The notes under the pieces were generated by a model. That model was not told where the DNA came from, made no database searches, and saw only the letters and a program-made list of their open reading frames with translations. Of a stretch of DNA of 64,000 nt, positions 1 through 29,778 are shown piece by piece. The position numbers and the translations under genes are program-made. Position 1 is the stretch's first letter. Every line of letters starts with the position of its first letter. The DNA lies in the IMG/VR virus record IMGVR_UViG_3300044644_001125, positions 248,001 to 312,000 of that record. The stretch is one strand, 5' to 3'.

Positions 1-10
1 AAGAAAATCG

Positions 11-604
11 TTGGCCAAAGAACATGGTGAAGTATTCTCAATCGATGATGCTGTAATTGATGTCGATTTTAAAGCAGAATTTGCACCTAGACCACAATCA
101 GTTATCGAATTCTACGTTCCAAAAGAATTACGTGGGCAAGGTATTGGTACCAAACTATTACAAATGGCTGTTTCCAAGTATCCAATGCTTGGTGGTCAAG
201 TTAGTTCAATGGCTTCATTGAAGGTATTTTACAACTTAGATTTTAGAAATCCAAGTATTCCTAAAGGATCGATTCAAGATCATGTGGATATTATGAATGA
301 TTATAGTTCAGTGTATATGGCACATACCGATGATAAAGGTGTACCGTACAGTAAACTTAAAACTGAATCAGTTGATATTAGAACTTTAGTTGATACTATT
401 GATAAACTAGAATCAGAAATTCTAGCTGAAAAGTCTTTGAGTAAAGCACAACAACGGTTGTTTGGTGCGGTTAAACATGCCCAAGAAACTGGTGATGCAT
501 CCAGTCCTAAAATAGCAAAGATGGCTAAGTCGATTAGTAAATCAGATGTTAAAGACTTTGCTAGCACTAAGCATAAAGGCCTACCTGAGAAAAAGAAGAA
601 ATAG
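11..604 (+). CDS. Probable virion-packaged multidomain protein, probably 5'-truncated by the window edge: GNAT acetyltransferase-like domain plus C-terminal DUF3008-like domain
   Basis: GNAT acetyl-CoA motif VPKELRGQGIGTKLL; internal leader-like segment KLKTE-SVDIRTLVDTIDKLESE; C-terminal SKAQQR...KDFASTKHKGLP resembles DUF3008; the frame is open to the window start. Confidence 0.6.
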   Translation: MAKEHGEVFSIDDAVIDVDFKAEFAPRPQSVIEFYVPKELRGQGIGTKLLQMAVSKYPMLGGQVSSMASLKVFYNLDFRNPSIPKGSIQDHVDIMNDYSSVYMAHTDDKGVPYSKLKTESVDIRTLVDTIDKLESEILAEKSLSKAQQRLFGAVKHAQETGDASSPKIAKMAKSISKSDVKDFASTKHKGLPEKKKK

Positions 605-605
605 T

Positions 606-1418
606 ATGGAAATCCGTTATCTTTTAGATAAGTTGAAGTTGATTGAGTCTGAGGTGGAACAGCCAAAAGATGATGAAGTTCAAGAACCCGTTAAGGCAGA
701 ACCAGTCAAGCAAGAACCTCAAAAGGTTGATAAACCAGAACAACGATTGGCACCAAATGGAAAACCTTCCAAATTAAATGCTGGTCAATACCGCATGGTA
801 AGAACCCCTGAATTCAAAGCATGGTTTGGTGATTGGGAACACGATGAACATAAGTATCAATCTAGTGAAATCGTTGGCGCGAATGAAGAACCATTAGTAT
901 GCTATCGAGGCAACGTCGAAGATTTTGGTGATACATTCTCTTATGATAAGCAAAACCTAACACATAAATCAGTAAGTAATACATTTGGATTTTTCTTTAG
1001 TACAGACTCGAGCGATGCCACTCATTACACAGGTGACACGGGTAATACACAAGCCGTATTTTTAAATATAAGAAATCCATTAAGATTACGGCAAAAATAC
1101 ATTTCTGATATGGACGAGTTTGTTAAATTAATGAAAACCGCTAATGTGTCATTATCATCTGATACATTGGATAGTATCGTCAATTATTTGAATGGCATCC
1201 GTTCCTCATTTGATTTGCATGACACCCACAAATACTTAACCGGTGGTGGTTCATTACTACGTAATGATTTAATATCAGCTGGCTATGATGGTATGATGTT
1301 CCTCGAAAATAAACATGAAGGTGCAATCGTCGTTGCATTCAACCCAAACCAAGTTAAATCTGCGATTGGTAATGTAGGATTCAGTACCAAATCTGACAAA
1401 ATGCACGAGGAACTCTAA
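606..1418 (+). CDS. ADP-ribosyltransferase-like protein (ART-PolyVal-like), paralog 1, with MEIRYLLDKLKLIE leader
   Basis: Start placed at ATG 606 because the leader matches the next two genes; LAPNGKPS..RTPEFKAWFGDWE..EPLVCYRG..FFS..YDG..FNPNQVKSA. Confidence 0.7.
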   Translation: MEIRYLLDKLKLIESEVEQPKDDEVQEPVKAEPVKQEPQKVDKPEQRLAPNGKPSKLNAGQYRMVRTPEFKAWFGDWEHDEHKYQSSEIVGANEEPLVCYRGNVEDFGDTFSYDKQNLTHKSVSNTFGFFFSTDSSDATHYTGDTGNTQAVFLNIRNPLRLRQKYISDMDEFVKLMKTANVSLSSDTLDSIVNYLNGIRSSFDLHDTHKYLTGGGSLLRNDLISAGYDGMMFLENKHEGAIVVAFNPNQVKSAIGNVGFSTKSDKMHEEL

Positions 1419-2020
1419 TGGAAATCCGTTATCTTTTAGACAAATTAAAGTTACTTGAATCTGAGCAATTACTAGCACCAAATGGAAAGCCAAGTAATTT
1501 GAATCCGGTTCAATACCAACAAGTAAGAACACCTGCTTTTAAAGCATGGTTTGGTGACAGTAAAGTAGTTGATGAAAACGGTGAACCCTTGGTTGTATAT
1601 CACGCAACTAATGCTGATTTTACTGAATTTGATACTAATTTAGGAAGCGGAGTAGCAGGTAAAGGTACTTACGTTACTTCAATAAAACCATCTAATGACA
1701 ACTATGGGAATTATGTAATGCCATTGTTTGTTAGTATTCGCAATCCTATCGACTTTTCAAGTGGTGATAAGGCAATAAACGATAAAGCTGAAGATTTAGG
1801 ATTGGAAGGATTATTCGAATTGTCAAGCCTAGCACAAATTGACAAGTGGAGTGGCGAGTTAAAACAAAAACTGCAACAAGAAGGATACGATGGTGCTGAA
1901 TTAAAGGGTGATGGTAATGCTAGATATTTCGTAGCATATAACTCGAATCAAATTAAATCTGCCATTGGTAATACCGGATCTTTCAGTCAGCAATCAAACA
2001 AAGTACACGAGGGACTGTAA
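1418..2020 (+). CDS. ADP-ribosyltransferase-like protein (ART-PolyVal-like), paralog 2
   Basis: Same leader; RTPAFKAWFGDSKVVDENGEPLVVYHAT..GYDG..NQIKSA; TAATG stop/start overlap. Confidence 0.75.
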   Translation: MEIRYLLDKLKLLESEQLLAPNGKPSNLNPVQYQQVRTPAFKAWFGDSKVVDENGEPLVVYHATNADFTEFDTNLGSGVAGKGTYVTSIKPSNDNYGNYVMPLFVSIRNPIDFSSGDKAINDKAEDLGLEGLFELSSLAQIDKWSGELKQKLQQEGYDGAELKGDGNARYFVAYNSNQIKSAIGNTGSFSQQSNKVHEGL

Positions 2021-2775
2021 TGGAAATCCGTTATCTTTTAGACAAATTAAAGTTACTTGAATCTGAGATAGAATTACCAAAAGATGATGAACCAACCGTT
2101 GAACCAACTAAACCGGTTAAAGTAAAAAAACAGGCAAGACTAGCACCGAATGGGAAACCATCCAATCTTAATCCAACCCAATATTTACAGGTTAGAACGC
2201 CTGCATTTAAAGCATGGTTTGGCGATTGGGAAAATAACCCAGAATCTGCTAGTAAAGTAGTGGATACTAATGGTGAGCCTATGGTAATGCATCATGGAAC
2301 TAAGTCAAAAACAAAATTCACTAGTTTCAACGCACATTCACCAAACTTCTTTACACATGACCCGGAGTATGCAAAAGTATATTCTCATGGAAAATCACCT
2401 ATATCGGTGTTTTTAAATATAAAACAGCCATTTGATACACGTAATAGTGATGCTCTCGATTTCTATAATAACAAATTCGTGCCCTATTTCACTAATAGAT
2501 TTCCAAGATTAGCAGCTGAAGGATTGTCACCATTAAAACAAGGTGAAGCAGTTCCATTTATATGGGCTGATCAGTTATTTTCAGCATTGCGTTCATTTGG
2601 TCGGGCTGGTGAAAGTTCATATGATGGTATATATGTTGATGAGGGTGATACTCCGAAAATTGCCAAATCATCTGCGCAATTTGCGATAGTACCAATGGGC
2701 AATACACAGATAAAATCAGCAAAACAGAATGTTGGATATAACCCAGAATCTGACAACATTCACGAGGAACTTTAA
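2020..2775 (+). CDS. ADP-ribosyltransferase-like protein (ART-PolyVal-like), paralog 3
   Basis: Same leader; RTPAFKAWFGDWE..SKVVDTNGEPMVMHHGT..FFT..YDG..TQIKSA; TAATG overlap. Confidence 0.75.
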   Translation: MEIRYLLDKLKLLESEIELPKDDEPTVEPTKPVKVKKQARLAPNGKPSNLNPTQYLQVRTPAFKAWFGDWENNPESASKVVDTNGEPMVMHHGTKSKTKFTSFNAHSPNFFTHDPEYAKVYSHGKSPISVFLNIKQPFDTRNSDALDFYNNKFVPYFTNRFPRLAAEGLSPLKQGEAVPFIWADQLFSALRSFGRAGESSYDGIYVDEGDTPKIAKSSAQFAIVPMGNTQIKSAKQNVGYNPESDNIHEEL

Positions 2776-2987
2776 TGGACGAACTAGAACGAATTAAACT
2801 ACTGGCAGGGATTAAGCCATTTGCTGGATTATCCACATACCAGCCATCAGAACAACACGCAACTGCTACTATGAAACGTGATTTTGAAAAATCAAATAAC
2901 ATCCAACCTGGAACTCCAGAATGGTTTAGACTTTGGTTTGCACAAACTCACTTAACTGGTGAATCACCATTTGGAGACAAACAATGA
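2775..2987 (+). CDS. Small hypothetical phage protein
   Basis: Translationally coupled ORF; ELERIKLLAGI motif, related to QLRVLAGQ in the 3250 protein. Confidence 0.65.
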   Translation: MDELERIKLLAGIKPFAGLSTYQPSEQHATATMKRDFEKSNNIQPGTPEWFRLWFAQTHLTGESPFGDKQ

Positions 2988-3232
2988 GATTGCACGAATT
3001 ATTTGAAGAAGCTAGTGCCGGTGCAACAAGTGCAGGTGATATAGCGGCAGTATACAATCCAAATCTTGCCATTGGTAAAAGATCAAAAAGTTACGCAGGT
3101 AGCCCAGGAAAACCTGGAACAAAAGCACCAAAACCACCTAAAGTGGTTCAACCAACGAATTCAGATGGTACGGCTAAAAACGCGCTAAATATGAAAGACA
3201 ACTTGTTTGGTGGAACTCCCATTAAACGCTAA
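2984..3232 (+). CDS. Small probable internal head protein (MRLHELFE leader)
   Basis: ATGA overlap; leader ends in L-F-E and is followed by ASAGATSAG; K/P-rich. Confidence 0.65.
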   Translation: MRLHELFEEASAGATSAGDIAAVYNPNLAIGKRSKSYAGSPGKPGTKAPKPPKVVQPTNSDGTAKNALNMKDNLFGGTPIKR

Positions 3233-3249
3233 CCTTAAGGACCCCCAAA

Positions 3250-4713
3250 ATGAAAGACATTTTAGATAAACTCGATGCAATCGAAACACCAGTAGCTGGT
3301 GTAGCAGCACCCACATTACCATCACCAATTCAATTGGATGAAAGTGCACAATTACGTGTACTAGCAGGCCAATCTTCACTTCTTACTGAAGCAGCTAAGG
3401 TAAAGAAACCAAAAGCTAAGAAAGAAGAAAAAGTCGAAGAACAACAAGTTGAAAGTTTAGATGATGAAATGGAAGAAGATTTGGAAGAATCTGCAGAACA
3501 AGCAGCTGCACGTGCTAAATTTGAAAACTTAGTTACTAAAGTTGCACCTACGTCTAAATCTGGTTCTGCAACCGATGCAATGAAAGCACAGACTGGTAAA
3601 GATAAAAAACCAGTAGGTAAAGGTGGTGCAGCATTCAAAAAAGAACTCGATAAAGAATTGAAAACCGAAGATTCTAAACCAAGTGCTGGTTTAACTAAAA
3701 AAGAGAAATCTGCAGTAGTTAAGAAAGCAGTTGCCGGTAAAGATATTGGAAAAAAAGGTAAAGGCTTTGAGAAAGTTGAAAAAGCAGCAGCAAAAAGTGG
3801 AGCTAAAGACCCTAAAGCAGTTGCAGCAGCCGCTATGTGGAAAGGCCAAGCTAAAAAGAAAGCAGTTAAGGAATCAATCGAACCTAAACTAACTTTCAAA
3901 CAAATGGTCACTTTAGTTCAAGAAAGCGGTGGTCAACAACAAATCGATGCGGTTGATACTGAATTGTTTGCATGGGCACAACGTGTTGCTAGTGCCAAAT
4001 ACGAAGGTGTTAAACAAGAACTTTATGCCGGTATGGTATACGAAAACATGGGTGGTGAATTCCGTATGTTTGACGTATTATCGGAAGCAATGACCGGACA
4101 CCCTGATACTTGGTCAGATCCACGTTGGGATGGTCCAGATCCAGCAGAAGCACCTGTTTCACACAAGGCGTTGGAGTACTTCAATGATAATTTCTATGAA
4201 ATCGCATGGCCAAGTGTTGCAGAAGAACTCAAAGCTATGATTGAAAACGACGAAAGTGGCGATATCATGTGGCCAATTGTTGCTATTGGTAAATCCAAAT
4301 ATGGAAATGAAAAGGTCAACACCGCTGCCGAGCTTGGTAAAATTAAAAATGCAATTTTAAACATGCTCGACGAAAAAACAATCAACGACATATACGACAA
4401 TGCAATTTCTAAATTTTGGAGTAAGCATAATACCGACCCCAGTTTTCAAGATAAGAATGACGAGAGTTTTGAAGAATCATTCGACGAAGAATTCGAAGAA
4501 GCATTTGGTAAACATCAAGCTAAACAAAACTGGTTTGAAACGCTAAACGCAGCATTAGAATCAGAAGGTTTGGTTGACCAATGGCCAACTGGTCGTAATA
4601 TTTCATATGGTCAAACTGTACGTGTAAAATCAAATGATGGTGAACGTCTTATTTCAGTAACTCGTGAAACAGACGGCCGTTATGAACGACCAGTTCACTA
4701 CAAACTTCGTTAA
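3250..4713 (+). CDS. Probable internal head/core protein with multiple (I/L)-X-E processing-like sites
   Basis: AAGGA RBS; MKDILDKLDAIE leader; LDE-S, LTE-A, VKE-S, LSE-A sites; alternating acidic and K/A-rich tracts. Confidence 0.65.
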   Translation: MKDILDKLDAIETPVAGVAAPTLPSPIQLDESAQLRVLAGQSSLLTEAAKVKKPKAKKEEKVEEQQVESLDDEMEEDLEESAEQAAARAKFENLVTKVAPTSKSGSATDAMKAQTGKDKKPVGKGGAAFKKELDKELKTEDSKPSAGLTKKEKSAVVKKAVAGKDIGKKGKGFEKVEKAAAKSGAKDPKAVAAAAMWKGQAKKKAVKESIEPKLTFKQMVTLVQESGGQQQIDAVDTELFAWAQRVASAKYEGVKQELYAGMVYENMGGEFRMFDVLSEAMTGHPDTWSDPRWDGPDPAEAPVSHKALEYFNDNFYEIAWPSVAEELKAMIENDESGDIMWPIVAIGKSKYGNEKVNTAAELGKIKNAILNMLDEKTINDIYDNAISKFWSKHNTDPSFQDKNDESFEESFDEEFEEAFGKHQAKQNWFETLNAALESEGLVDQWPTGRNISYGQTVRVKSNDGERLISVTRETDGRYERPVHYKLR

Positions 4714-4736
4714 TCCTAAAAGATAATGAACACAAG

Positions 4737-4760
4737 AAGCCAGTCTAGTACTGGCTTTTT
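4737..4760 (+). terminator. Intrinsic terminator
   Basis: AAGCCAGT-ctagt-ACTGGCTT followed by a T run. Confidence 0.75.
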
Positions 4761-4775
4761 AAATTGGAGACCTAT

Positions 4776-4880
4776 ATGAGAATTCACGAAATACTAGAAA
4801 ACACAACCAAACAATTTCCAATTCCATGGAACTCGGCATGGAAGCCGAGTGACCCCCTAGGACGGGTTGCGACGCGCTAG
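4776..4880 (+). pseudogene. 5' fragment of a fourth leader-bearing ART-like gene
   Basis: GGAG RBS and ATG 4776 give MRIHEILENTTKQFPI..., stop at 4878-4880; FHGT (ttc cat gga act, 4822-4833) lies in a shifted frame. Confidence 0.55.
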
Positions 4881-6340
4881 CGGAGCAGAGGACGCGAGGG
4901 TCATTTAATTGACATGAGCGGCAACCGTCTTACCTGTTATTATACAGACATAGCTTACAAAGACAACTTCAATTTAACTAAATAGAGATATGAGCACATC
5001 TACTAAAATCACTGGATACAAAACGAAATGCCTGTTAAATCAGGAGCAGATCGCTTTGTTCGATAAATCAGTGGATGGTTGTGTATTTGCATATAACGAA
5101 TTTCTTGCATTGGTGAACGCCGAATATGCCATAACTGGTAAGATTTCTACCAAATGCTGTAGTGTCAAAGAATTAAGAAATAACAACCCGTGGTTAAAAG
5201 AGCTATCTAGTAGAGTAATCGATGGATCTCGTCTTAATCTATTGGATGCATTTAGCCGGTTCTTTAGTAAGCAAAATGACTTCCCAGTATTTAAAAACCG
5301 GTATAGTAAGAAATCACTAAGACATGCCGGCGATTGTTACTTGTACATGAAAAATGGGTATATGTACGCAGTTATTCCAAAAATTGGTCATGTGAAGCTA
5401 TTGACTGATTTCTCGGATTCAGCTAATCAATTTGATTATACAACTGTTACTGGGATAACCTTATCCCAAGATAGTCTTGGAAACTTTTATGTCTCATTTC
5501 ATGCGAAATCGACTACTGCTCATTTACCAAAGACCCATAAATCAGTTGGTATAGACCCAGGTCTTACTACTTTTGCGACCTTGAGCACTGGTAAAAAGAT
5601 CAAGAATCCAAGATTTCGTGAAAGAACAGAAAACCGAATGAAAGCGCTTCAGCGTAAACTCGCGAAATGTACCAAGAACTCAATAAGATATAACAAATAT
5701 AAGAAACAAATAGCTGCACTTCATCAGAAATCGGCAAATCAATTAAATGACTTCCATAAAAAGACATCAACTAAAATAACCAAAGGCTACGACAACATCT
5801 ATATTGAGGAAACTCAGACCAAAAACATGATGTCTCGTGGTAAGAAAAAAACAAAAAGCCCTAGACGCCTAGGGAAATCATTCGCTCAAGCCGGAATCAG
5901 TGCATTCCGTGAAATCTTGATAAGAAAGGCGGAGCTTGTTGGTAAAAAGGTTCATCTTGTACCAGCTCGCAATACAACAAAAACATGCAGTAGTTGTGGT
6001 CACATCCACAACGATTTAACTCTTAAAGATCGGTCATGGACTTGCCCCGTATGCGGTATTGAACATGACCGAGACATAAATGCTGCCCGTAATATATTAC
6101 AAAAAGGGCAAGCTAATCGGTTTACCGGAGGTGGACTTGTTGCACAGGGCAACAATACCGGGTTACCTAATCAAAAAAGGACGCAGCAAAGCGGGTTAAC
6201 TCCCGTTAGCAAAAGTACCAGTTCAGCTACTAGCAGTACCAGTAGCCTACCTGTTATTTAAACGTCTATTCACGGTTTATCCCGTGAACCGAGGACACGA
6301 CGTCCGAAGTTCTCAGGGATGCCGCGAAATACCGACGGTT
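4831..6340 (+). mobile_element. Non-autonomous tnpB-only element (IS200/IS605- or IS607-related); ends approximate
   Basis: GC-rich hairpins on both sides of tnpB (ACTCGGC/GCCGAGT 4831-4850; TTCACGG/CCGTGAA 6269-6288); lies between two fragments of an ART-like gene; no tnpA adjacent. Confidence 0.65.
4990..6261 (+). CDS. tnpB: RNA-guided endonuclease TnpB
   Basis: RuvC-I VGIDPG, RuvC-II IYIEE, zinc finger CSSC..CPVC, RuvC-III DRDINAARNI; N-terminal HTH-like region. Confidence 0.93.
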   Translation: MSTSTKITGYKTKCLLNQEQIALFDKSVDGCVFAYNEFLALVNAEYAITGKISTKCCSVKELRNNNPWLKELSSRVIDGSRLNLLDAFSRFFSKQNDFPVFKNRYSKKSLRHAGDCYLYMKNGYMYAVIPKIGHVKLLTDFSDSANQFDYTTVTGITLSQDSLGNFYVSFHAKSTTAHLPKTHKSVGIDPGLTTFATLSTGKKIKNPRFRERTENRMKALQRKLAKCTKNSIRYNKYKKQIAALHQKSANQLNDFHKKTSTKITKGYDNIYIEETQTKNMMSRGKKKTKSPRRLGKSFAQAGISAFREILIRKAELVGKKVHLVPARNTTKTCSSCGHIHNDLTLKDRSWTCPVCGIEHDRDINAARNILQKGQANRFTGGGLVAQGNNTGLPNQKRTQQSGLTPVSKSTSSATSSTSSLPVI

Positions 6341-6360
6341 TCTGCCACCTATGCTGGTGC
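6120..6360 (+). ncRNA. Putative TnpB omega-RNA (scaffold plus guide running into the flanking gene); boundaries uncertain
   Basis: Low-complexity C-terminal tail of tnpB followed by GC-rich hairpins (6269-6288; GGAC-acgac-GTCC); this is the expected position for TnpB guide RNAs. Confidence 0.45.
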
Positions 6361-6706
6361 CGAACCAAGCGCAACCGGTGAAATTACCCATTTCAAACAA
6401 TGTGGTAATGTGATGCCACTATTAATCAAACCCGGAAAATCAATGGTTGTCGATGCGAAAGGTGCTAACTGGAATGACATTTACATCAAAAAATATCCTA
6501 TCTTGGAAACAACCAACGATTTCGCGGAATATGCCCAATCAAATGGCAAGGATACTTTGTATATCAAAAACGTAAGAGATAATAAGACTTGGCAGAAAGA
6601 TAAACTTCCTAGCACGGTTGTATTTGCATTTCACCCATCTTATATAAGATCAATTAATGCAAAATTCGACCCAGCCAATCACGAAGATGAAGATTTAATG
6701 GCATGA
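6332..6706 (+). pseudogene. 3' fragment of the interrupted ART-like gene
   Basis: PTVSATYA..GNVMPLLIK..DTLYIKNVRD..VFAFHPSYIRSINAKFDP matches the C-terminal half of the ART-like family; no good RBS or start codon. Confidence 0.6.
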
Positions 6707-6769
6707 TATTATCAACTGTGTTATACTACATTCTCAGAATAACAGTCAATTACCACGAGGAGAAATAAG

Positions 6770-7934: not shown

Positions 7935-10106
7935 ATGAGTTATGTAGATGCTTTTTATGAAAAAGATCGCGATATTATCCACGTAGTTGAACGTGATACA
8001 GATGGCATTCGCCATTACCGAGAATTTCCAGCAAACTATGTCTTTTATTACGAAGACCCAAATGGTAACCATCATTCAATGAAAGGTAAACCATTGTCTA
8101 GGGTTAAAAGTAAAACCCACAAAGAACATCATAAGAATATTGCTATATTTGGTCAAACCAAGAAGTTATATGAAAGTGATATCAATGTTACCTATCGTTG
8201 CCTTGAAGACCATTACCTTAACGCAGATGCACCTAAACTCAATGTCGCGTATTTCGATATCGAGACCAGTATGTGTCCTGATCGTGGGTATGCCGCACCA
8301 GACGATCCTTTTATGCCAATTGTTTCTATTGCTGTATATCTTCAGTGGTCTGAAACTATGATTTGTTTGGCAATTCCACCAAAACATATGAGTATAAAAG
8401 AAGCTGAAGAGCAAGTAGCTGAGTTTGAGAACACGTTTATCTTTAAAACAGAAAAGGAATTATTAGATACATTCCTTACTATTATCGAAGATGCTGATGT
8501 ATTAAGTGGTTGGAATTCTGAATCATTCGATATTCCATATACCGTTAATCGAGTTGCTAAGGTTTTAAGCAAAAACGATACTCGTCGATTCTGTTTATGG
8601 GATCAATCTCCTAAGAAACGTGAATTCGAGAAGTTTGGTAAGGTTTCGACTACTTTCGATTTGGTTGGTCGAGTTCATATGGATTACTTGGACATTTATC
8701 GCAAGTATACCCATGAAGAAAAGCCATCTTATCGATTGGATGCTATTGCTGAATATGAATTAGGTGACCATAAAACTCCGTATGATGGTACATTAGAACA
8801 GCTATACAATCAAGACTTTAAGACTTTTATCGAATATAACCGACAAGACGTTGCACTGTTAGATAGAATGGATAAGAAGTTGAAGTTTATGGATTTGGCT
8901 AATACGACTGCTCATGGTTGTACTGTATTGTTACCAACTACGTTAGGTTCCGTTGCAGCTATTGAACAAGCTATTATCAATGAGGCGCATAGTAAAGGGC
9001 AGATTGCACCTAATAGAAAGCCACGTAATGATAATGAAAACACGCAAGCTGCTGGTGCGTATGTTGCTTATCCCAAAAAAGGTCTACATGATTGGGTTGC
9101 TTCATTAGATATCAACTCGCTGTATCCTAGTACGATTCGTGCACTTAACATGAGTCCAGAGACTATCATCGGACAGTTAAGACCAGTGGCAACTGATAAG
9201 TTTATTGCAGATCAAATGGCTACAGGTAAGAAGTTTGCTTCATGCTGGGAAGGTGTATTTTCGACTTTAGAATATGATGATGTTATGTCAAGAGATTCAA
9301 ATCGTATGCTTACTATCGATTGGGAAGAAGGTAGCAGTGATGAACTTAGTGCTGCTCAAACCTACGATTTAATTTTCAAATCTGGTCAATCATGGATGTT
9401 AAGTGCAAATGGTACTATCTTTACTTTTGAAAAAGAGGGAATTGTACCTGGGCTATTGAAAAAGTGGTACGCTGATAGGCAAGGTATGCAAGCGAAAATG
9501 AAAATTGCACGCGATGCCGGACTCGACATCGAAGAACGATACTGGAGTATTAAGGAGCAATTTTGTAAATTATTGCTAAATAGTTTATACGGTGCTTTGC
9601 TCAATAGCGGTTGCAGGTTTTTTGATAAACGTATTGGCCAAAGTACAACGTTGACTGGTAGGTCTATCACTAGACACATGACAGCTCAGGTTAATGAAAT
9701 TGTATGCGGTGAATATAATTATCTAGGAAAATCAATACTTTACAATGACACGGATTCGCTAGAATCTGGATCTATCATTCGAACAACGAGTGGAGATTTG
9801 ACTATCGAAGAATTGTTCGATCGTGGTAATTTGAAATGGAATTCTGGTGATAAAGAATATTCACGCGATGATGATATACGAGTAATACACTGCGATGGGA
9901 CTGACAACTTGTCATATACCAATTATAATTATGTTTATCGACATAAAGTGTCTAAAAGACGATTTAAAATTATGACAGCGAATGGAAAAACGGTAACAGT
10001 AACCGAAGATCATAGTGTTATGATCAAAACGGATACTGGATATATTGAAAAGAAACCGATGGATATTAAACCAGGTGATGTGGTAATGACTATTAATACA
10101 GTATGA
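7935..10106 (+). CDS. DNA polymerase family B (gp43-like), N-terminal part fused to the split intein N-half
   Basis: Exo I FDIET, Exo II GWNSESFD, Exo III YNRQD; motif A DINSLYPS; motif B KLLLNSLYG; motif C YNDTD then intein sequence. Confidence 0.95.
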   Translation: MSYVDAFYEKDRDIIHVVERDTDGIRHYREFPANYVFYYEDPNGNHHSMKGKPLSRVKSKTHKEHHKNIAIFGQTKKLYESDINVTYRCLEDHYLNADAPKLNVAYFDIETSMCPDRGYAAPDDPFMPIVSIAVYLQWSETMICLAIPPKHMSIKEAEEQVAEFENTFIFKTEKELLDTFLTIIEDADVLSGWNSESFDIPYTVNRVAKVLSKNDTRRFCLWDQSPKKREFEKFGKVSTTFDLVGRVHMDYLDIYRKYTHEEKPSYRLDAIAEYELGDHKTPYDGTLEQLYNQDFKTFIEYNRQDVALLDRMDKKLKFMDLANTTAHGCTVLLPTTLGSVAAIEQAIINEAHSKGQIAPNRKPRNDNENTQAAGAYVAYPKKGLHDWVASLDINSLYPSTIRALNMSPETIIGQLRPVATDKFIADQMATGKKFASCWEGVFSTLEYDDVMSRDSNRMLTIDWEEGSSDELSAAQTYDLIFKSGQSWMLSANGTIFTFEKEGIVPGLLKKWYADRQGMQAKMKIARDAGLDIEERYWSIKEQFCKLLLNSLYGALLNSGCRFFDKRIGQSTTLTGRSITRHMTAQVNEIVCGEYNYLGKSILYNDTDSLESGSIIRTTSGDLTIEELFDRGNLKWNSGDKEYSRDDDIRVIHCDGTDNLSYTNYNYVYRHKVSKRRFKIMTANGKTVTVTEDHSVMIKTDTGYIEKKPMDIKPGDVVMTINTV
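9756..10103 (+). other. Split intein N-fragment (116 aa, Ser1)
   Basis: Starts SLESGSIIRT..LTIEELF immediately after YNDTD; block B VTEDHSV; ends KKPMDIKPGDVV then a stop. Confidence 0.9.
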
Positions 10107-10113
10107 GGAGATA

Positions 10114-11844
10114 ATGATGAATGAATTGGAAGAACGTAATTTAACAGTACTAACATTTAAAAAGAAGTACCCACGGCAGTACAAGTACTTGCTTGAATAT
10201 TACGGCGGGGTTCGTGTATTTGACAAAGCAGCGGCGGTGTGTTTATATTTACGAGGGGCTAAACCTCCGACATGCTCTATTTGTGGGAAATTACTTGCGG
10301 TTGATAAATGGTCTAGGAATTCGTCATATTCGCCAAGGTGTAATACTCACTCGAAAACTAACCCTGATACTATAGTAACTCGTGAGATATTAGAGGAAAA
10401 TAACCCACATGGGTATACTATTGTTGACGTGCCACTATATGCGTCACCATCGACCTATATAAAACTACACTGCCATAATCATGGTGATTTTTCACAACCA
10501 GCGTCTAATTTCCTTAAAGGTATGCGGTGTAATAAGTGCTATGATCGTAGTACTGAAATTCCAGTAAAAGTCGATTATAATACTTGGTTGGAGCGTAGTA
10601 TTGGACATTTTGGTGATTTTTATGATTATTCAAAAGTCAGTTTTACAAGAGTGGAACAGGATATGATAACAATAGGATGCCCAGATCATGGAGATTATGA
10701 GCAACGTGCATCGACTCATATGCGCGGCCATGGTTGCCCAAAATGTGCAAACGCATTGAGTAGTACAAATCTAACTCGATCGACTGCAGAATTTATCAGG
10801 TTGGCAAATATCAAGCATTCTGGAAAATACCAATACCCGAATACAATATATAATGGTTCTCGTTCTATTGTGGAAATTGAATGCCCGATACACGGGCCAT
10901 TTAATCAAGTCGCGTATTACCATCTTGCTGGGAATGCGTGTCAGCAGTGTGGTTATGAGATATCAACAAGCAGGTCCGCTGCAGAAAAAGAATTGGTTGC
11001 GTGGTTGGAAGATACGGGTATTTCTAACGTAACCCACTCTAATAGGATTTTCAGTTACGAGTTAGACGTTTATCTACCAGATTATAACATTGCAATCGAA
11101 TATAATGGATTGCATTGGCATTCTTCCAATAGTAAAGATTTAGATTGGAAATATAAATCTGCACACTTGTACAAGACCACTGAGTGTGAAAGTCGAGGTA
11201 TTCAACTATTTCATATCAACGAATCAGAATGGGGATTGAATGCAACGAAAAAGGAAATATGGAAATCGATTATACTTGAAAACCTACAGGTCGCACCAAC
11301 GATATTAAAGATTACTGACTGCGATATCATAATTGTGGATTCTAGCACCGCAATCGAGTTCATGGAAGAGAATCATATTTATGGTTACTTTCCTGGATCA
11401 TCGCATATTGGTTTAGAACGTGATGGTGTACTGGTTGCATTAGCCACCTTTGCCAAATCTAATGATAGAAATGCGAAACCAAATACGTATGAACTGGTAA
11501 GGTATGCCACCCTAATATACACAAGCATACCATCCGCGTTTAGTGTAATACTTTCGCATTTCACACAGGATAAGACTGGTGCATTAATTGCATATGCTGA
11601 TCGTAGATTCGATAACGGTGCTTTATTTGAATCCAATGGGTTCGTGTTAGATTCAATTGAAAAACCAACATATCAATATATCAAAGGTCAAAAAACGTAC
11701 CATCGTTGCAAATTCACCAAATCAATTGCGGAAAATACATTACCAATATTTGACAAAAGCAAAACTTTGGTTGAAAATATGTATGATAACAAATACCGCA
11801 GAATGTGGGATTGTGGCCAATTGATTTATATTTTACAATTTTAG
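10114..11844 (+). CDS. Free-standing homing endonuclease-like protein (zinc-ribbon repeats, Vsr/DUF559-like PD-(D/E)XK domain, C-terminal GNAT-like domain)
   Basis: Own GAGGAG RBS; three CxxHG...CxxC repeats; ELDVYLPDYNIAIEYNGLHWHS..GIQLFHINESEW; C-terminal YELVRYA..AYADRRF..WDCG. Confidence 0.85.
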   Translation: MMNELEERNLTVLTFKKKYPRQYKYLLEYYGGVRVFDKAAAVCLYLRGAKPPTCSICGKLLAVDKWSRNSSYSPRCNTHSKTNPDTIVTREILEENNPHGYTIVDVPLYASPSTYIKLHCHNHGDFSQPASNFLKGMRCNKCYDRSTEIPVKVDYNTWLERSIGHFGDFYDYSKVSFTRVEQDMITIGCPDHGDYEQRASTHMRGHGCPKCANALSSTNLTRSTAEFIRLANIKHSGKYQYPNTIYNGSRSIVEIECPIHGPFNQVAYYHLAGNACQQCGYEISTSRSAAEKELVAWLEDTGISNVTHSNRIFSYELDVYLPDYNIAIEYNGLHWHSSNSKDLDWKYKSAHLYKTTECESRGIQLFHINESEWGLNATKKEIWKSIILENLQVAPTILKITDCDIIIVDSSTAIEFMEENHIYGYFPGSSHIGLERDGVLVALATFAKSNDRNAKPNTYELVRYATLIYTSIPSAFSVILSHFTQDKTGALIAYADRRFDNGALFESNGFVLDSIEKPTYQYIKGQKTYHRCKFTKSIAENTLPIFDKSKTLVENMYDNKYRRMWDCGQLIYILQF

Positions 11845-11850
11845 GAGTTT

Positions 11851-11988
11851 ATGATGCAATTTGTTTCAGAATTATCAACGGTGACATTCGTTGAGGAGTT
11901 ATCACCGTTTGATGACGAATACGTATACGACATTGGAGTTAACGCAACAGATCCATGGTTTTTTGGTAACGATATACTAGTTCATAAT
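11851..11988 (+). other. Split intein C-fragment (46 aa), terminal His-Asn, +1 Ser
   Basis: Block F VYDIGV and block G ILVHN followed by S. Confidence 0.92.
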
Positions 11989-12837
11989 TCAGTATATTTC
12001 TCTGCGTATGAAACACTTAAACCAGATATCGAAGCTGGTTTGATTCCATGGGATAAAGAATCAATCATTCAGTTTTATGATGCAATTGGTGAAGAAGTTA
12101 ACGAGACTTTCCCTAAATTCATGTCCACTGCGTTTCATTGCCCTAAAGCACGTGGTTCTGTTATTAAGGCTGGTCGTGAGATTATTGGGTCTAAAGCGCT
12201 ATTCATTACTAAGAAACGGTACGCGGTTCTTTACTTCGACAAGGAAGGTAAACGTACAGATATTGATGGTAAGCCTGGAAAAGTAAAAGCTATGGGTTTG
12301 GACTTAAGACGATCCGACACCCCACCTCCCATTCAAGACTTTTTAAGTAATGTATTGGATATGGTTCTTAATGGCAAACCACAAGAGGATACAATCAAGT
12401 ACATTACCGAATTCAGACAAGAATTCAAGAAATGGAATGGTTGGGAAAAAGGTTCACCAAAACGAGCTAATAACATTACCAAGTATGGTACACTATTAAC
12501 CGATAAAGGCAAAGCAACGATACCAGGTCAAGTCAGAGCTAGTATCAATTGGAATACTTTAAAACGCATGAATAGTGACAAATATACTATGTCTATTATC
12601 GATGGATCAAAAGTGGTAGTTTGTACACTCAAAGATAACCCGATGGGATTCAAGAGCGTAGCGTACCCAGTTGATGAACAAAGATTACCTCAATGGTTCA
12701 AAGAACTCCCATTTGATGAAGCCATTATGGAAGAAAAGTTAATTGATGATAAGTTGGACAACTTGATTGGCGTACTCAACTGGGATTTGAGTGAAACCCG
12801 TCAGAATAACTTCTTTAATTCGTTGTTTTCGTTTTAA
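11851..12837 (+). CDS. Split intein C-half fused to the DNA polymerase B C-terminal part (palm/thumb)
   Basis: AGGAG RBS; YVYDIGV..FFGNDILVHN|SVYF; KKRYA; KAMGLDLRRSDTP. Confidence 0.95.
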   Translation: MMQFVSELSTVTFVEELSPFDDEYVYDIGVNATDPWFFGNDILVHNSVYFSAYETLKPDIEAGLIPWDKESIIQFYDAIGEEVNETFPKFMSTAFHCPKARGSVIKAGREIIGSKALFITKKRYAVLYFDKEGKRTDIDGKPGKVKAMGLDLRRSDTPPPIQDFLSNVLDMVLNGKPQEDTIKYITEFRQEFKKWNGWEKGSPKRANNITKYGTLLTDKGKATIPGQVRASINWNTLKRMNSDKYTMSIIDGSKVVVCTLKDNPMGFKSVAYPVDEQRLPQWFKELPFDEAIMEEKLIDDKLDNLIGVLNWDLSETRQNNFFNSLFSF

Positions 12838-24366: not shown

Positions 24367-26121
24367 TTAAAGCACAACTGCTTCGATTAATCGTATGTCG
24401 GTTGTATTATTAGTCTCTAAAGCAATTGCGAAAATATGATTGCTTGGTGATTTTGTTGTAACTGCAGTGCCGTCTACACCTGCTGTTAATTTGTCACCCT
24501 TTGTAACTGGACCACTAACCAAAACAGGAACTCTTCCTTTCAATGCGATGTAGGTACCATTAACCAATCCACTATTCATCATAAACGCTGGGTGTTCACT
24601 AACAACGCCAATTGCATAATCATCAATATTACATGCGGTTACTTCGACTGTTCCACCAATAGAAACTACAGTACCAACTGGGTATTCTTTATCTGTTAGG
24701 TATTTTTCAGCTAAATCAGCATATTGAGCCGACGTTGCAACACCATTAAATTTGTTAGCTGCGATGTCCATGTTACCATCACGCACCGCGATAGTGTTAG
24801 CAAGTTTTGCAATAGTTGCAGTTTTATAAACAGTATCACCAACACCAGAAACCGTATAATCTTGAACTTTTAATTTGTTAGCAGTATCAATAGTTCCGAT
24901 TACACTGTTTACGTTGATAGCACCGTTGGCATCACGAACAACAACAGTATTTGGTGTTGCTGGTATACTTGGATTTAAACCGGTAAGTTGTGTAGCACTA
25001 CCAGTCAAAGTACCAGTTACATTACCGGTGAATGTACGATTGGTTGCATGTAGTAATACATCACCATTAGATGCTAATACATTACCGGTTACGTTACCGG
25101 TTACGTTACCAGTTACGTTACCAGCCACCGTACCTGTTATATCACCAACAAATGTAGGTGCTGACACAGTACCAGTCGAGTTTAAAGTAGAAACGTATGC
25201 GGCATTCCATCTATTTGTCGTAGCACCTAAATCAACCACACCACCATTACCAGGCATTACAATTTGTTTACCAATAACTAAAACACCTTGGGTTGCAGTA
25301 CTACTTGCAATTTTAAAAGTGATTGGGTTTTCTAGTGTATTTTCAAGAATTACTTGATCGCTACCATCAATTCTAACGGATAAATCGTTGTTATTACCAA
25401 CAGTGAATCCAGGGTTTTTAAAGTGAACAAGTGTTTCAAATGTTGGATTATCACGACGCATATAATATTGAGCATCAAACCCACCCAATTGAAGAGCATT
25501 TGATGTAGTACCCCAGTAAATCCAATCGCCTAAACTAACACCAGATGAACTTTTTGCTAGTGTTACACCTTGTTTAATGATCGTAAAATCAGGAATAACG
25601 TCAGCACTCAATTGAAATTCTGCATCTTGATTCAATACGATAACTACCTTACCATTCGCAGATAGGGTCGTAATTTTATGAGTAACACCAGTTGTATCCA
25701 TTACGGTTGGTGATGCTAATGATGATTGCCCAGTCGTTAAATCTGGACCAATAAGTTTAAATGTAGTTCCATCCCAAGCATGTAGTTGAAGAGTGTTACT
25801 ATTGAACCACAAATCACCACGTGCTGGATTTACTGGTTCTACTGAACCAAATTCCGCACCACCTAGTACTTTGAACTTTTCACTGTCATATACTTTTATT
25901 TTTTTGGTACCAGTGTCGTACCATAACTGGCCTTGAATTGCTTTGGGTGGCTGAGTTGCATTTGCAAAACTTTCCAAAATATGAAGGAAGTTTTCATTTT
26001 GAACTTCACCATAACCAGCATAATTCTTACCAATAAAGGTTAAATCAGTTGAGGTATCGATAGTACCATCGGCAACTGTTGTTAATTGTGTTCCATTAAA
26101 TTTGTTTACTTGATATGCCAT
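24367..26121 (-). CDS. Tail fibre protein with a C-terminal autoproteolytic chaperone-like domain
   Basis: Shared N-module GKNYAGYGEVQNENFLHILESFA..GQLWYD; GNVT repeats; YADLAEKY..ALKGRVP. Confidence 0.75.
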   Translation of the reverse strand: MAYQVNKFNGTQLTTVADGTIDTSTDLTFIGKNYAGYGEVQNENFLHILESFANATQPPKAIQGQLWYDTGTKKIKVYDSEKFKVLGGAEFGSVEPVNPARGDLWFNSNTLQLHAWDGTTFKLIGPDLTTGQSSLASPTVMDTTGVTHKITTLSANGKVVIVLNQDAEFQLSADVIPDFTIIKQGVTLAKSSSGVSLGDWIYWGTTSNALQLGGFDAQYYMRRDNPTFETLVHFKNPGFTVGNNNDLSVRIDGSDQVILENTLENPITFKIASSTATQGVLVIGKQIVMPGNGGVVDLGATTNRWNAAYVSTLNSTGTVSAPTFVGDITGTVAGNVTGNVTGNVTGNVLASNGDVLLHATNRTFTGNVTGTLTGSATQLTGLNPSIPATPNTVVVRDANGAINVNSVIGTIDTANKLKVQDYTVSGVGDTVYKTATIAKLANTIAVRDGNMDIAANKFNGVATSAQYADLAEKYLTDKEYPVGTVVSIGGTVEVTACNIDDYAIGVVSEHPAFMMNSGLVNGTYIALKGRVPVLVSGPVTKGDKLTAGVDGTAVTTKSPSNHIFAIALETNNTTDIRLIEAVVL

Positions 26122-26157
26122 TACTTAACTCCATGGGGCTTCATTATATTTAGCCGT

Positions 26158-27948
26158 TTAAACTCGACCTACAACGATGTTAATAACACCATATTCACCA
26201 TCAAAATCCTCAATGGCTTTACCAATCACTGTTCCAATTTTAGGGTGTGTGTCTGAAATAGCATACCCATTACTACCACTAACCATCAAATCACCTTTTT
26301 TTACAGTTCCAGTAACTTTACATGGTACTTTACCTTGTAGTGCTACTGGAACAACGAACTCGCCAGATGCCATTGAATTCATCAAATAAGCAGGTTGTGT
26401 CGAAACGACACCAGCGACTCTTGGTGATTTACTCGAACCGATTGTGACTTCAAACTCACCACCAAACTCAACTACTGTACCAGCAGGATATTGACTATCT
26501 GCTATATAGTTTTCAGCCAAGTCAGCATATTGCGCTTGTGTTGCAACACCATTGAATTCAGTTGCATAGATTTTGTTGAATTTATATGCGGTTGAACCAA
26601 GATTAACTGATTGCTTCGTATAGATGGTTGCTTTAGAATCCCAGTTCAGCAAACCAGCAGCAGTTGATGTGATAAATGATAATGATGCACCAGTAGTGCC
26701 CATATCCACATCTAAGTTACCAGTCGTTGATTTAATTGTTGGTGCTGATGTTGATACTGACAATTTAAGTTGGCTACCGTTATCTGGACCGACTGTAATA
26801 CCAGTATTTGCAACATACAGCATATCTAAAGTACCAAGTGTTTTTAGATTAGACGAAACTACAGTTGGATTTAATGATGTACCAGTCAACGTAGTTGCGT
26901 TTGCTGGTGGGTCGATATCTCTAGTTCCATCAAACAACACACCATTGATACGACGTGCAGTTGCTAATTGTGTTGCAGTATTTGAATTACCGGATAAGTT
27001 AGCACCTCTGAATTCTTTTGCTTGTACGATACCAAACGTGCTTAGTGATGTATCAGGTGCAGTGACAGTTCCAGTAACATTACCAACTAAGTTTGCAGTA
27101 ACAGTACCAGCACTAAAAGATCCGTTTCCATCCCTGACAACAACCGTACCTGGTGAAGAAGTAGAAGCAGCATTTAATGTCCAAATTTGTTCTGAAGTTC
27201 CATCAAAATCATTACCTAAAAGATAATTGCCTGCTTTTAGTAACTTAGTTGTACCAGCCTTGAGCGTAATTGAGCTTTCACCAGTAAACCCAACACCATT
27301 GATGGTAACTGTATTCTTCAATCTAGTAGCAGTATCAGCATTACCTGAAAATGCACCTTTCATTGAAAGTACACTAGAAATCGTTAATCCAGCAACTAAG
27401 TCTAAAAAACCATTGATTGGGTTTGATGCAGCAATAGTAAACGCAGTAGCTGAACAAACAGCAATTGCAACGTCATTTACTGTTAAAATTAATATTGGTC
27501 TAGTTGTACCGGTAGAATCAACCACGCTAGTTGCTTTAGCTCTGGTAGTACCAAAGTTAACAACAGATTCGGGTCCAATAAATTGCCATTCAAAATTATG
27601 ATAGGCATGTAATTGGGATGATTTTGTATCGAACCATAACTGGCCTGGTGTTGGTGTTAACGGTGCGGTGTCAGTTACGGTAGCTGAACCAATTGGACTC
27701 CAATTTGAACCATTGTATACATTTAAAATATTTGAGTTCGTATCAAACCAAGTTTGACCAGTAACTGGTCTATTAGGAGCACCATCATTAGCAAAGTTTT
27801 CTAAAAGATAAAGGAAGTTTTCATTTTGAATTTCACCATATCCTACATAGTTTCTACCAACTAATCCAATATTAGAATCAACGTTAAGTTGACCATCTTG
27901 TAAGGTCGTAAATTCAGTTCCATTGAATTTATTAATTGTATAAGGCAT
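26158..27948 (-). CDS. Tail fibre protein with a C-terminal autoproteolytic chaperone-like domain
   Basis: Shared N-module; ATARRINGVLFDGT fibre motif; YADLAENY..ALQGKVPCKV. Confidence 0.75.
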   Translation of the reverse strand: MPYTINKFNGTEFTTLQDGQLNVDSNIGLVGRNYVGYGEIQNENFLYLLENFANDGAPNRPVTGQTWFDTNSNILNVYNGSNWSPIGSATVTDTAPLTPTPGQLWFDTKSSQLHAYHNFEWQFIGPESVVNFGTTRAKATSVVDSTGTTRPILILTVNDVAIAVCSATAFTIAASNPINGFLDLVAGLTISSVLSMKGAFSGNADTATRLKNTVTINGVGFTGESSITLKAGTTKLLKAGNYLLGNDFDGTSEQIWTLNAASTSSPGTVVVRDGNGSFSAGTVTANLVGNVTGTVTAPDTSLSTFGIVQAKEFRGANLSGNSNTATQLATARRINGVLFDGTRDIDPPANATTLTGTSLNPTVVSSNLKTLGTLDMLYVANTGITVGPDNGSQLKLSVSTSAPTIKSTTGNLDVDMGTTGASLSFITSTAAGLLNWDSKATIYTKQSVNLGSTAYKFNKIYATEFNGVATQAQYADLAENYIADSQYPAGTVVEFGGEFEVTIGSSKSPRVAGVVSTQPAYLMNSMASGEFVVPVALQGKVPCKVTGTVKKGDLMVSGSNGYAISDTHPKIGTVIGKAIEDFDGEYGVINIVVGRV

Positions 27949-27966
27949 TTCTAATCTCTCCTGAAC

Positions 27967-29769: not shown

Positions 29770-29778
29770 GTTATTACC

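Follow-up and report, generated by a model that had tools for sequence, protein, structure and literature searches.

Why would a phage line up several enzymes of one family, each encoded by its own gene, behind almost the same short start? The question is raised by a 64,000-nucleotide stretch of DNA (the window; bases 248001–312000 of IMGVR_UViG_3300044644_001125, a single IMG/VR virus sequence of 327,256 bp and 38% GC), near whose beginning three genes for proteins resembling ADP-ribosyltransferases (ARTs), here named ART1, ART2 and ART3, follow one another at 606–2775. The phage is a freshwater jumbo myovirus of the GAP32/CBB group. An initial annotation of the locus, made from the sequence, regarded the gene products as stand-alone injected enzymes with different targets, shuffled by recombination between constant ends. 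Comparison with five related contigs and with lake metagenomes gives good support to the second half of this proposal, with cassettes being replaced, deleted and fused in frame at a shared leader and at constant blocks. The first half turns on what the leader does, and here a role in sending the proteins into the phage head is the best-supported answer. Positions are those of the window unless marked as genome positions.

Single-domain ART-PolyVal genes in tandem

The translational coupling of the three genes is borne out, with TAATG stop/start overlaps at 1415–1419, 2017–2021 and 2772–2776. All three open with MEIRYLLDKLKL(I/L)ESE, contain an LAPNGKPS...FKAWFGD block and close with HE(E/G)L. 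The near-identical leader and divergent cores had been described correctly: over ~48 nt the ART2 and ART3 leaders show 100% nucleotide identity, whereas the cores show only 30–50%. The first catalytic strand reads CYRG in ART1, VYHA in ART2 and MHHG in ART3, in agreement with the YRG, YHA and HHG motifs first noted. The three genes are nevertheless only part of a larger array, which also includes ART0, a GNAT-DUF3008 gene that sits between ART0 and ART1, the gene for a 487-aa protein (p487), and a broken ART5 (Table 1).

Membership in the Pfam family ART-PolyVal (PF18760) was assessed against its curated cutoff of 31.2 bits, which is exceeded by ART0, ART1, ART2 and ART3, and by ART5 in the form in which it is intact in the related contig L088 (203 aa, 34 bits). 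An AlphaFold2 model of ART2, built on a 72-row alignment, has a mean pLDDT (predicted local distance difference test) of 94 and a pTM (predicted template modelling score) of 0.87. The best structural matches of this model are almost all of the ART fold, and include PARP/tankyrase, diphtheria toxin, MbcT and AcrIF11; ranked first is 9k3a_B, a packaged ejection protein of cyanophage A4 (Z 7.2). The best ART-fold matches have Z scores of 6–7.2, and 326 chains reach a Z of at least 5. Although a Z of 6–7 is middling when taken alone, the consistency of these matches to the model, together with the profile scores, makes the ART fold that had been proposed for the array a well supported assignment. 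No PDB sequence was matched in a profile search with the ART alignment. AcrIF11 (PDB 6kyf), a phage anti-CRISPR ART and the second-best Foldseek match, resembles the array enzymes in being small, stand-alone and on the diphtheria-toxin-like side of the fold, but it has no detectable sequence relationship to them, lacks a leader, and is not known as a packaged protein.

The ART-PolyVal family is very large, with 16,070 representatives at E≤0.001, and nearly all of the top 150 matches are proteins of 1000–7000 aa with several matched stretches each (up to 24), in keeping with the earlier statement that these domains mostly occur within giant polyvalent proteins. Short full-length proteins number only three among these 150, all with the leader of the array, so the stand-alone form is unusual in this family. 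The literature searched contained neither a description of tagged stand-alone ART-PolyVal arrays nor a characterised ART-PolyVal member. The array genes share with the units of polyvalent proteins (Iyer et al. 2017, PMC5512222) the Pfam family, the N-terminal block, the C-terminal tail, GNAT as a typical neighbour, and a predicted delivery with DNA. They differ from them in that each ART unit is a gene of its own, of 200–270 aa, consisting of a leader and one domain, where a polyvalent protein combines 2–15 effector domains, unrelated to one another, into a single large chain; the only two-module proteins here are GNAT-DUF3008 and, in a relative, P0153.

Of the two ends initially described as constant, only the leader is peculiar to this lineage. 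The LAPNGKPS..FKAWFGD block and the C-terminal NQxKSAxGN..F tail are conserved family-wide rather than being phage-specific; the block reaches 64% identity in unrelated phages, and the ART2 model folds it with confidence into the domain. Judged by these alignments, the lineage-specific portion is limited to the 14–16-aa leader, and the conserved blocks are parts of the ART-PolyVal unit.

The active site of ART-PolyVal consists of His on strand 1, Tyr on strand 2 and Asp on strand 5 (PMC5512222), and in the family alignment conservation of the strand-1 His is 90% or more. ART2 has the complete H-Y-D set; ART3 reads H-F-D, ART1 R-F-D and ART0 T-W-D, and ART4, a cassette of the relatives, has Asn at the catalytic-His position. 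Against the H-Y-D pattern of the family, the YRG of ART1 and the YTG of ART0 lack the catalytic His. The Arg of ART1 lies within an H-Y-D family background, and the array does not belong to the R-S-E clade of T4 Alt and VIP2, as the sole Pfam match at E≤0.1 is ART-PolyVal.

These substitutions, of the strand-1 His by Thr (ART0), Arg (ART1) or Asn (ART4), and of the strand-2 Tyr by Trp or Phe in ART0, ART1 and ART3, raise the prospect that ART0, ART1, ART4 and perhaps ART3 are pseudoenzymes or have changed chemistry, serving as NAD+ binders, NADases, decoys or structural internal proteins, so that the array would not be a set of transferases with different targets. However, every copy retains the strand-5 Asp and the NAD-fold blocks, and Arg is normal at this position in R-S-E transferases (PMC5512222). 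The cassettes are moreover under purifying selection (dN/dS versus relatives 0.07–0.11), ART1 among them (0.09–0.10). As an account of the array this is rather doubtful, and it would not conflict with packaging, although some copies may indeed have altered chemistry or none. Whichever applies, the natural series of His, Arg, Thr and Asn active sites provides material for asking what ART-PolyVal modifies.

Exchange of cassettes among relatives

Six array architectures occur among contigs that are ~80–100% identical in their flanks. This genome has ART0, GNAT-DUF3008, ART1, ART2 and ART3, with ART5 broken by an insertion sequence (IS). L008 is alike, except that ART2b (205 aa) replaces ART2 and ART5 is absent; L088 is without ART0, and has ART2b, ART4 in the place of ART3, and ART5 intact. 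In L015 ART2 is followed by ART4, in L104 ART2b is followed by ART4, and in L089 GNAT is followed directly by ART2. A protein of a further relative, P0153, is an in-frame fusion of leader, GNAT, internal leader and ART.

The recombination between constant ends that the initial annotation proposed is seen directly at junctions in the five related contigs. The operon of L008 is 97–100% identical to that of this genome, with identity at 100% up to ~1440, collapsing over 1545–1945 and returning to 100% from 1961. In L088 the ART0 junction falls inside a 47-nt leader common to ART0 and GNAT. The internal leader of the GNAT gene acts as a joint after which either DUF3008 or an ART can follow: in L089 it is a full leader copy (NIRDILDKLDLIESE), and in P0153 the ART stands after it, where DUF3008 stands in this genome. 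The corresponding internal segment here is, by its sequence, a candidate joint for both cleavage and recombination.

The locus is widespread in freshwater, with at least 19 lake or freshwater metagenome runs (2016–2025) containing 48–100% of its sampled words. In the lake metagenomes, depth over the ART2 core is at most one third of flank depth, and an alternative contig spans the same constant blocks; both alleles therefore coexist in lakes. Read depth peaks over the LAPNGKPS...FKAWFGD block of ART1. If the cassettes are effectors of the first minutes of infection, these population data document concretely how such sets are reshuffled by phages.

That the array is diversified holds in so far as the cores diverge, but this has not occurred only in place. 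In a poorly resolved tree of the cores, for which the family sample consisted of the best matches to ART2 and 16 of the 69 branches were well supported, ART2 groups with strong support with units of foreign polyvalent proteins. The diversification therefore includes import, of the ART2 core at least, and the cores have at least two origins; the tree is not to be read more finely than this.

As the leader and the conserved blocks recur head to tail at high nucleotide identity, they are proposed to double as homology arms, through which cassettes would be replaced, deleted, duplicated and fused in frame to give strain-specific effector sets. A constant targeting part joined to exchangeable catalytic cores, with recombination at conserved junctions, is also seen in polymorphic toxin and effector loci. 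The array differs from these in being phage-encoded, in the proposed delivery by the capsid rather than by a secretion system, and in having no interleaved immunity genes.

The leader as a candidate head-targeting tag

In T4, a 10-residue capsid targeting sequence (CTS) sends unrelated internal proteins into the prohead core, after which gp21 cuts off the tag; a Glu-to-Asp exchange at the cut prevents this processing while targeting is retained. Alt is likewise processed, and is also trimmed C-terminally, while the sets of internal proteins vary between T-even phages (PMC3012670, PMC9026906). ART-PolyVal domains and neighbouring GNAT domains have earlier been predicted to be virion-packaged effectors (PMC5512222, PMC9503650). 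The present phage encodes a gp21-family prohead protease (Peptidase_S77, PF03420; 82.7 bits, genome 1415–1846, in a gene at genome 1349–1975), adjoined by scaffold-like and Gp23-type capsid genes, and its capsid protein is 65–68% identical to those of GAP32, CBB, PA5oct and Vibrio phage 2.275.O. A megablast of window 1–6000 against isolated phages gave no match.

The leader of the array, referred to here as class A, is common to otherwise unrelated cargo, being found on ART0–ART3, GNAT and p487; ART0 and GNAT-DUF3008 have the variant MNMRDILDKL(D/K)L(I/V)E. When all six reading frames of the 327-kb genome were searched with a degenerate leader pattern, the cluster gave six N-terminal copies and one internal copy, and the rest of the genome a single unrelated match. 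A stricter pattern, searched in IMG/VR, recovered only the relatives L008 and L015, plus a chance match within the sheath gene of L091. Class-A leaders end in LIE↓S, LLE↓S, LVE↓S or LIE↓A, and in AIE↓T in p487 (arrows mark cleavage sites, predicted in the case of this phage). The phage’s own capsid protein contains QLSE↓SATAG, kept as L-x-E↓S in CBB and Vibrio phage 2.275.O, at the place of LTE65↓A in T4 gp23, and T4 IPII and IPIII both begin with MKTYQEFIAE↓A, whose tag ends as IAE10↓A. The end of the class-A leader is thereby consistent, as a sequence motif, with the likely cleavage site of the capsid protein and with the T4 sites. A function as a secretion signal was rejected, as the leader has no hydrophobic stretch.

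A second leader, M(R/K)IxE(I/L)(I/L)xE (class B), heads 15 open reading frames (ORFs) where ~0.7 would be expected, and differs from the MKTYQEFIAE of T4 essentially by one residue in length. It is borne by ART5 in L088 and by stand-alone GNAT homologues. Either tag can thus head the same families of cargo, as is predicted if the tags are interchangeable address labels. A further class-B protein, the 82-aa p82, resembles the capsid protein around its predicted cut in the part after the tag (45% identity over 29 aa, pairwise E 1e-4; ELFEEASAGATSAG in p82 and QLSESATAGATSAG in the capsid protein), and may be a mimic, a decoy or an assembly factor.

At least ten further class-B ORFs lie elsewhere in the genome, for example at genome positions 70975, 112424(-), 112494, 114341(-), 115150(-), 125802(-), 144846, 322574 and 326727; one has a DUF6321 match, one has weak metallopeptidase matches, and one adjoins the portal gene. 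Going by their starts, the class-B ORFs may form a large set of head-targeted proteins. DUF3008 homologues of marine and other phages (P0196, P0217, P0226 and P0267) begin with MKTFKQFREE or MKSYDQFKTD, near to the T4 CTS, and some are fused to DUF6321; DUF3008 may be a widespread family of internal head proteins.

The array lies in an operon (~ genome 245384–252760) in which genes abut or overlap throughout. The operon's first ATG is preceded, at a distance of 11 nt, by the motif GCTAAATAC; this motif is enriched upstream of genes, and precedes those for the scaffold, the tail sheath, the head-tail adaptor and other structural proteins. This placement suggests late co-expression of the operon. 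A separate 12-nt motif, ATTATCTTTTAG, is strongly over-represented, with a 9-nt core that occurs 247 times in 327 kb, mostly between genes. It occupies the spacer of promoters of the sigma70-like type (TTGACA-N5-motif-TATAAT), and also immediately precedes GCTAAATAC. Examples in the window lie at 619–630, 1431–1442, 2033–2044 and 4716–4727.

The mechanism proposed is that a late operon of a T4-type jumbo myovirus encodes internal head proteins. The cargo, namely four or five single-domain ART-PolyVal enzymes, GNAT, basic DUF3008 and Lys-rich p487, would be made as precursors with a short amphipathic N-terminal leader, which would act like the T4 CTS in directing each precursor to the scaffolding core of the prohead. 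The gp21-type prohead protease would then remove the leader after L-(I/L/V)-E14, and the mature enzymes would travel with the DNA to act on host macromolecules early in the next infection, using NAD+ or, for GNAT, acetyl-CoA. Packaging, cleavage and injection are the best-supported mechanism for the locus and are considered fairly probable, being inferred, as are the late timing, the targeting, the enzymatic activity and the targets.

The likeness, at the level of sequence, to IPI, IPII, IPIII and Alt of T4 comprises a short N-terminal tag on unrelated cargo, ending in (L/I)-x-E before a small residue; an encoded gp21-family protease and scaffolding core; a cargo set that varies among close relatives; and an ADP-ribosyltransferase as one class of cargo. 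Unlike the T4 CTS, the class-A tag is 12–16 aa long and of another sequence, and unlike Alt, with its R-S-E active site, the array ARTs are of the H-Y-D type. The array ARTs also stand in tandem, as four or five cassettes, and their phage is a GAP32/CBB-like jumbo phage of 327 kb. If the leaders are capsid-targeting tags, the locus would be a clear case of tag plus cargo outside the T-even phages, involving many proteins of a jumbo phage widespread in lakes, and would show that the commonest enzymatic domain of polyvalent proteins can be deployable as separate, hot-swappable genes. The array also supplies short candidate tags (12–16 aa and 9 aa) and the cognate protease, which are testable in vitro.

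Alternatively, the enzymes could be made late but stay in the producing cell, modifying phage or host components, or phage DNA and proteins, before lysis. The leader helix would then serve in regulation, inhibition or oligomerisation, or would bind a shared partner, for example the ClpA/B-like chaperone encoded ahead of the operon. The acidity of the mature ARTs fits this alternative, as does the ART2 model, in which the leader forms a confidently predicted helix joined to the domain. It accounts poorly for a leader carried by unrelated cargo, for the same cargo types behind a second, T4-CTS-like tag, and for a leader end that matches the likely cleavage site of the capsid protein. In addition, the ART-PolyVal family is typically found in virion-associated polyvalent proteins, and in a solved pre-ejectosome protein. 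A role confined to the producing cell is accordingly regarded as unlikely.

The near-identity of the leaders could also be mainly a matter of DNA or RNA, reflecting an embedded ATTATCTTTTAG element, a translational-coupling signal or a recombination hotspot, with the peptide incidental. In its favour, TTATCTTTTAG lies inside the leader codons of ART1–ART3, the motif occurs ~250 times genome-wide, mostly in promoter spacers, the leaders of ART2 and ART3 do not differ by a single nucleotide, and rearrangement junctions fall within leaders. The leaders of ART0, GNAT and p487, however, retain the DILDKL.L.E peptide with other codons and without the DNA motif, and in relatives the peptide changes are conservative (for example LLEAE and IIETE). 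A function as a recombination arm is in any case compatible with one as a peptide, and an incidental peptide is very improbable.

Several observations count against the packaging mechanism. The L-x-E motif is short and frequent by chance, and the mature ARTs have a pI of 4.9–6.6, unlike the basic internal proteins of T4. The array operon adjoins the ClpA/B-like gene and a DNA polymerase, outside the head module. In Pectobacterium phage CBB and Vibrio phage 2.275.O, where only the class-B pattern was tested, that pattern is absent, and the tags are therefore lineage-specific in their present form. The late-promoter assignment of GCTAAATAC rests solely on its association with structural genes, and use of the T4 late promoter TATAAATA was ruled out, with two copies in the window against 8.9 expected. 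The promoter-associated motif in the leader codons of ART1–ART3 could partly explain their nucleotide conservation, and ART0, ART1 and ART4, without the catalytic His of the family, are perhaps not transferases. A complex prediction of the protease with residues 1–40 of ART2 gave a score of 0.01, which argues neither for nor against binding.

A link between the tags and polyvalent proteins is suggested by P0035, a 2538-aa polyvalent protein encoded between gp13-like and sheath genes of another T4-type phage (L103 2128–9744). P0035 begins exactly at the end point of the ART2 leader (SEQLLAPNGKPSNL), and (I/L)-x-E closes each of its ART units, a pattern that the C-terminal (V/I/M)-H-E of the array genes also fits. 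This parallel with the P0035 units, and with the C-terminal trimming of Alt, is suggestive only. P0153 and P0035 are fused forms intermediate between array genes and polyvalent proteins. More tentatively, and at present short of probable, the leader may have two jobs, as a packaging address with protease site and as a DNA-level, in-frame joint for the swapping, loss, fusion and splitting of modules, which would make the array an intermediate between T4-style internal proteins and giant polyvalent proteins. If this is true, both the assembly of polyvalent proteins and the (I/L)-x-E at the ends of their ART units would be accounted for. Going one step further, the changes from His to Arg, Thr or Asn would mark the rise, in a single family, of new chemistries or new targets.

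P0035 can be translated only if TGA is read as Trp, and its phage therefore appears to use a recoded stop. Tunturiibacter phage Tunturi_5 was considered as a comparable array and set aside, since its four matching places are all inside one 1362-aa polyvalent protein.

Other features of the operon and genome

The remaining genes of the operon are listed with the array in Table 1. The GNAT assignment of the GNAT-DUF3008 gene follows from its motif A, RGQGIGTKLL, and from homologues of 51–68% identity that have Pfam GNAT matches. Profile searches gave no family match for p487, and a tblastn comparison of two tagged proteins (382 aa and 487 aa) with isolated phages was not informative. The hairpin that follows p487 is read, from its sequence, as the operon terminator; a terminator scan called it on the - strand only, and the four terminator matches equalled the shuffled mean of 4.0. 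At the ART5 site L008 is without the IS found here, and a few kb downstream it has another TnpB together with a serine-recombinase-like gene as a pair.

Table 1. Features of the ART-PolyVal array and its operon (window positions unless marked as genome positions; arrow, predicted cut).
Feature	Position	Strand	Description
ART0	genome 247226–247909		just 5' of window; leader MNMRDILDKLDLIE; ART-PolyVal 58.2 bits (whole-genome PF18760 search)
GNAT-DUF3008 gene	genome 247906–248604; 3' part 1–604	+	start 94 nt before window; leader MNMRDILDKLKLVESE
Internal leader-like segment DIRTLVDTIDKLESEILAE	374–430	+	between GNAT and DUF3008 parts
DUF3008 module	431–601	+	57 aa, basic, pI 10.3; PF11450 31 bits (cutoff 24)
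ART1	606–1418	+	270 aa; ART-PolyVal 63 bits
ART1 class-A leader MEIRYLLDKLKLIESE	606–653	+	predicted cut after LIE14
LAPNGKPS...FKAWFGD block, ART1	747–833	+	N-terminal conserved block
ART1 active-site positions	906–908; 1284–1292	+	Arg codon at catalytic-His place; YDG
ART2	1418–2020	+	200 aa; ART-PolyVal 90.7 bits; leader 1418–1465
LAPNGKPS...FKAWFGD block, ART2	1469–1558	+
ART2 exchanged segment	1545–1945	+	~residues 43–176, entire catalytic core
ART2 canonical H-Y-D	1601–1603; 1889–1891	+	H62 and D158, respectively; also Y85
ART3	2020–2775	+	251 aa; ART-PolyVal 42.8 bits; leader 2020–2067
LAPNGKPS...FKAWFGD block, ART3	2140–2226	+
ART3 active-site positions	2293–2295; 2623–2625	+	His and D, respectively; Phe at strand-2 Tyr place
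p70	2775–2987	+	small operon protein; start MDELERIKLLAG
p82	2984–3232	+	82 aa, basic, pI 9.9; class-B leader MRLHELFE↓E
p487	3250–4713	+	487 aa, Lys/Ala-rich; class-A leader variant MKDILDKLDAIE at 3250–3285; last gene of operon
GC-rich hairpin, then T-run	~4737–4763	+	visible in sequence
ART5 5' remnant	4776–4831	+	class-B leader MRIHEILEN
IS element with TnpB	4832–6335	+	TnpB ORF 4990–6261 (423 aa); within ART5, ~184 nt of ART5 gone
ART5 3' remnant	6336–6737	+	96% identical to L088 8515–8916

On the 5' side of the operon (genome 240530–244578), a ClpA/B-like ATPase gene is interrupted by ~1.2 kb; in its downstream piece the inserted segment ends in ...VHHN|T at the second P-loop, which gives it an intein-like look, and the ORF is uninterrupted, at 774 aa, in L008 and L088. 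At 7935–12837 a family-B DNA polymerase is split into ORFs of 723 aa and 328 aa by a 576-aa HNH/homing-endonuclease-like ORF.

Further into the window, a 4529-aa ORF at 32218–45807 (-) has FG-GAP repeat and CBM_5_12 matches, lacks ART-PolyVal, and probably encodes a very large fibre or surface protein; a 1142-aa ORF follows it. Four tandem tail-fibre-like paralogues of 553–600 aa at 24367–31440 (-) have common N-terminal parts (phrog_14394/15511) and divergent C-termini, and are a second array with a constant end and a variable end. Long tandem arrays of ~100-aa paralogues (...EIAPKSTEI...GWRLP...YWSSTE) occur at genome 238020–240350, ~158000–161100 and 324234–326550, many of them connected by one recurring AGATCTAAAAGATGATTGA junction.

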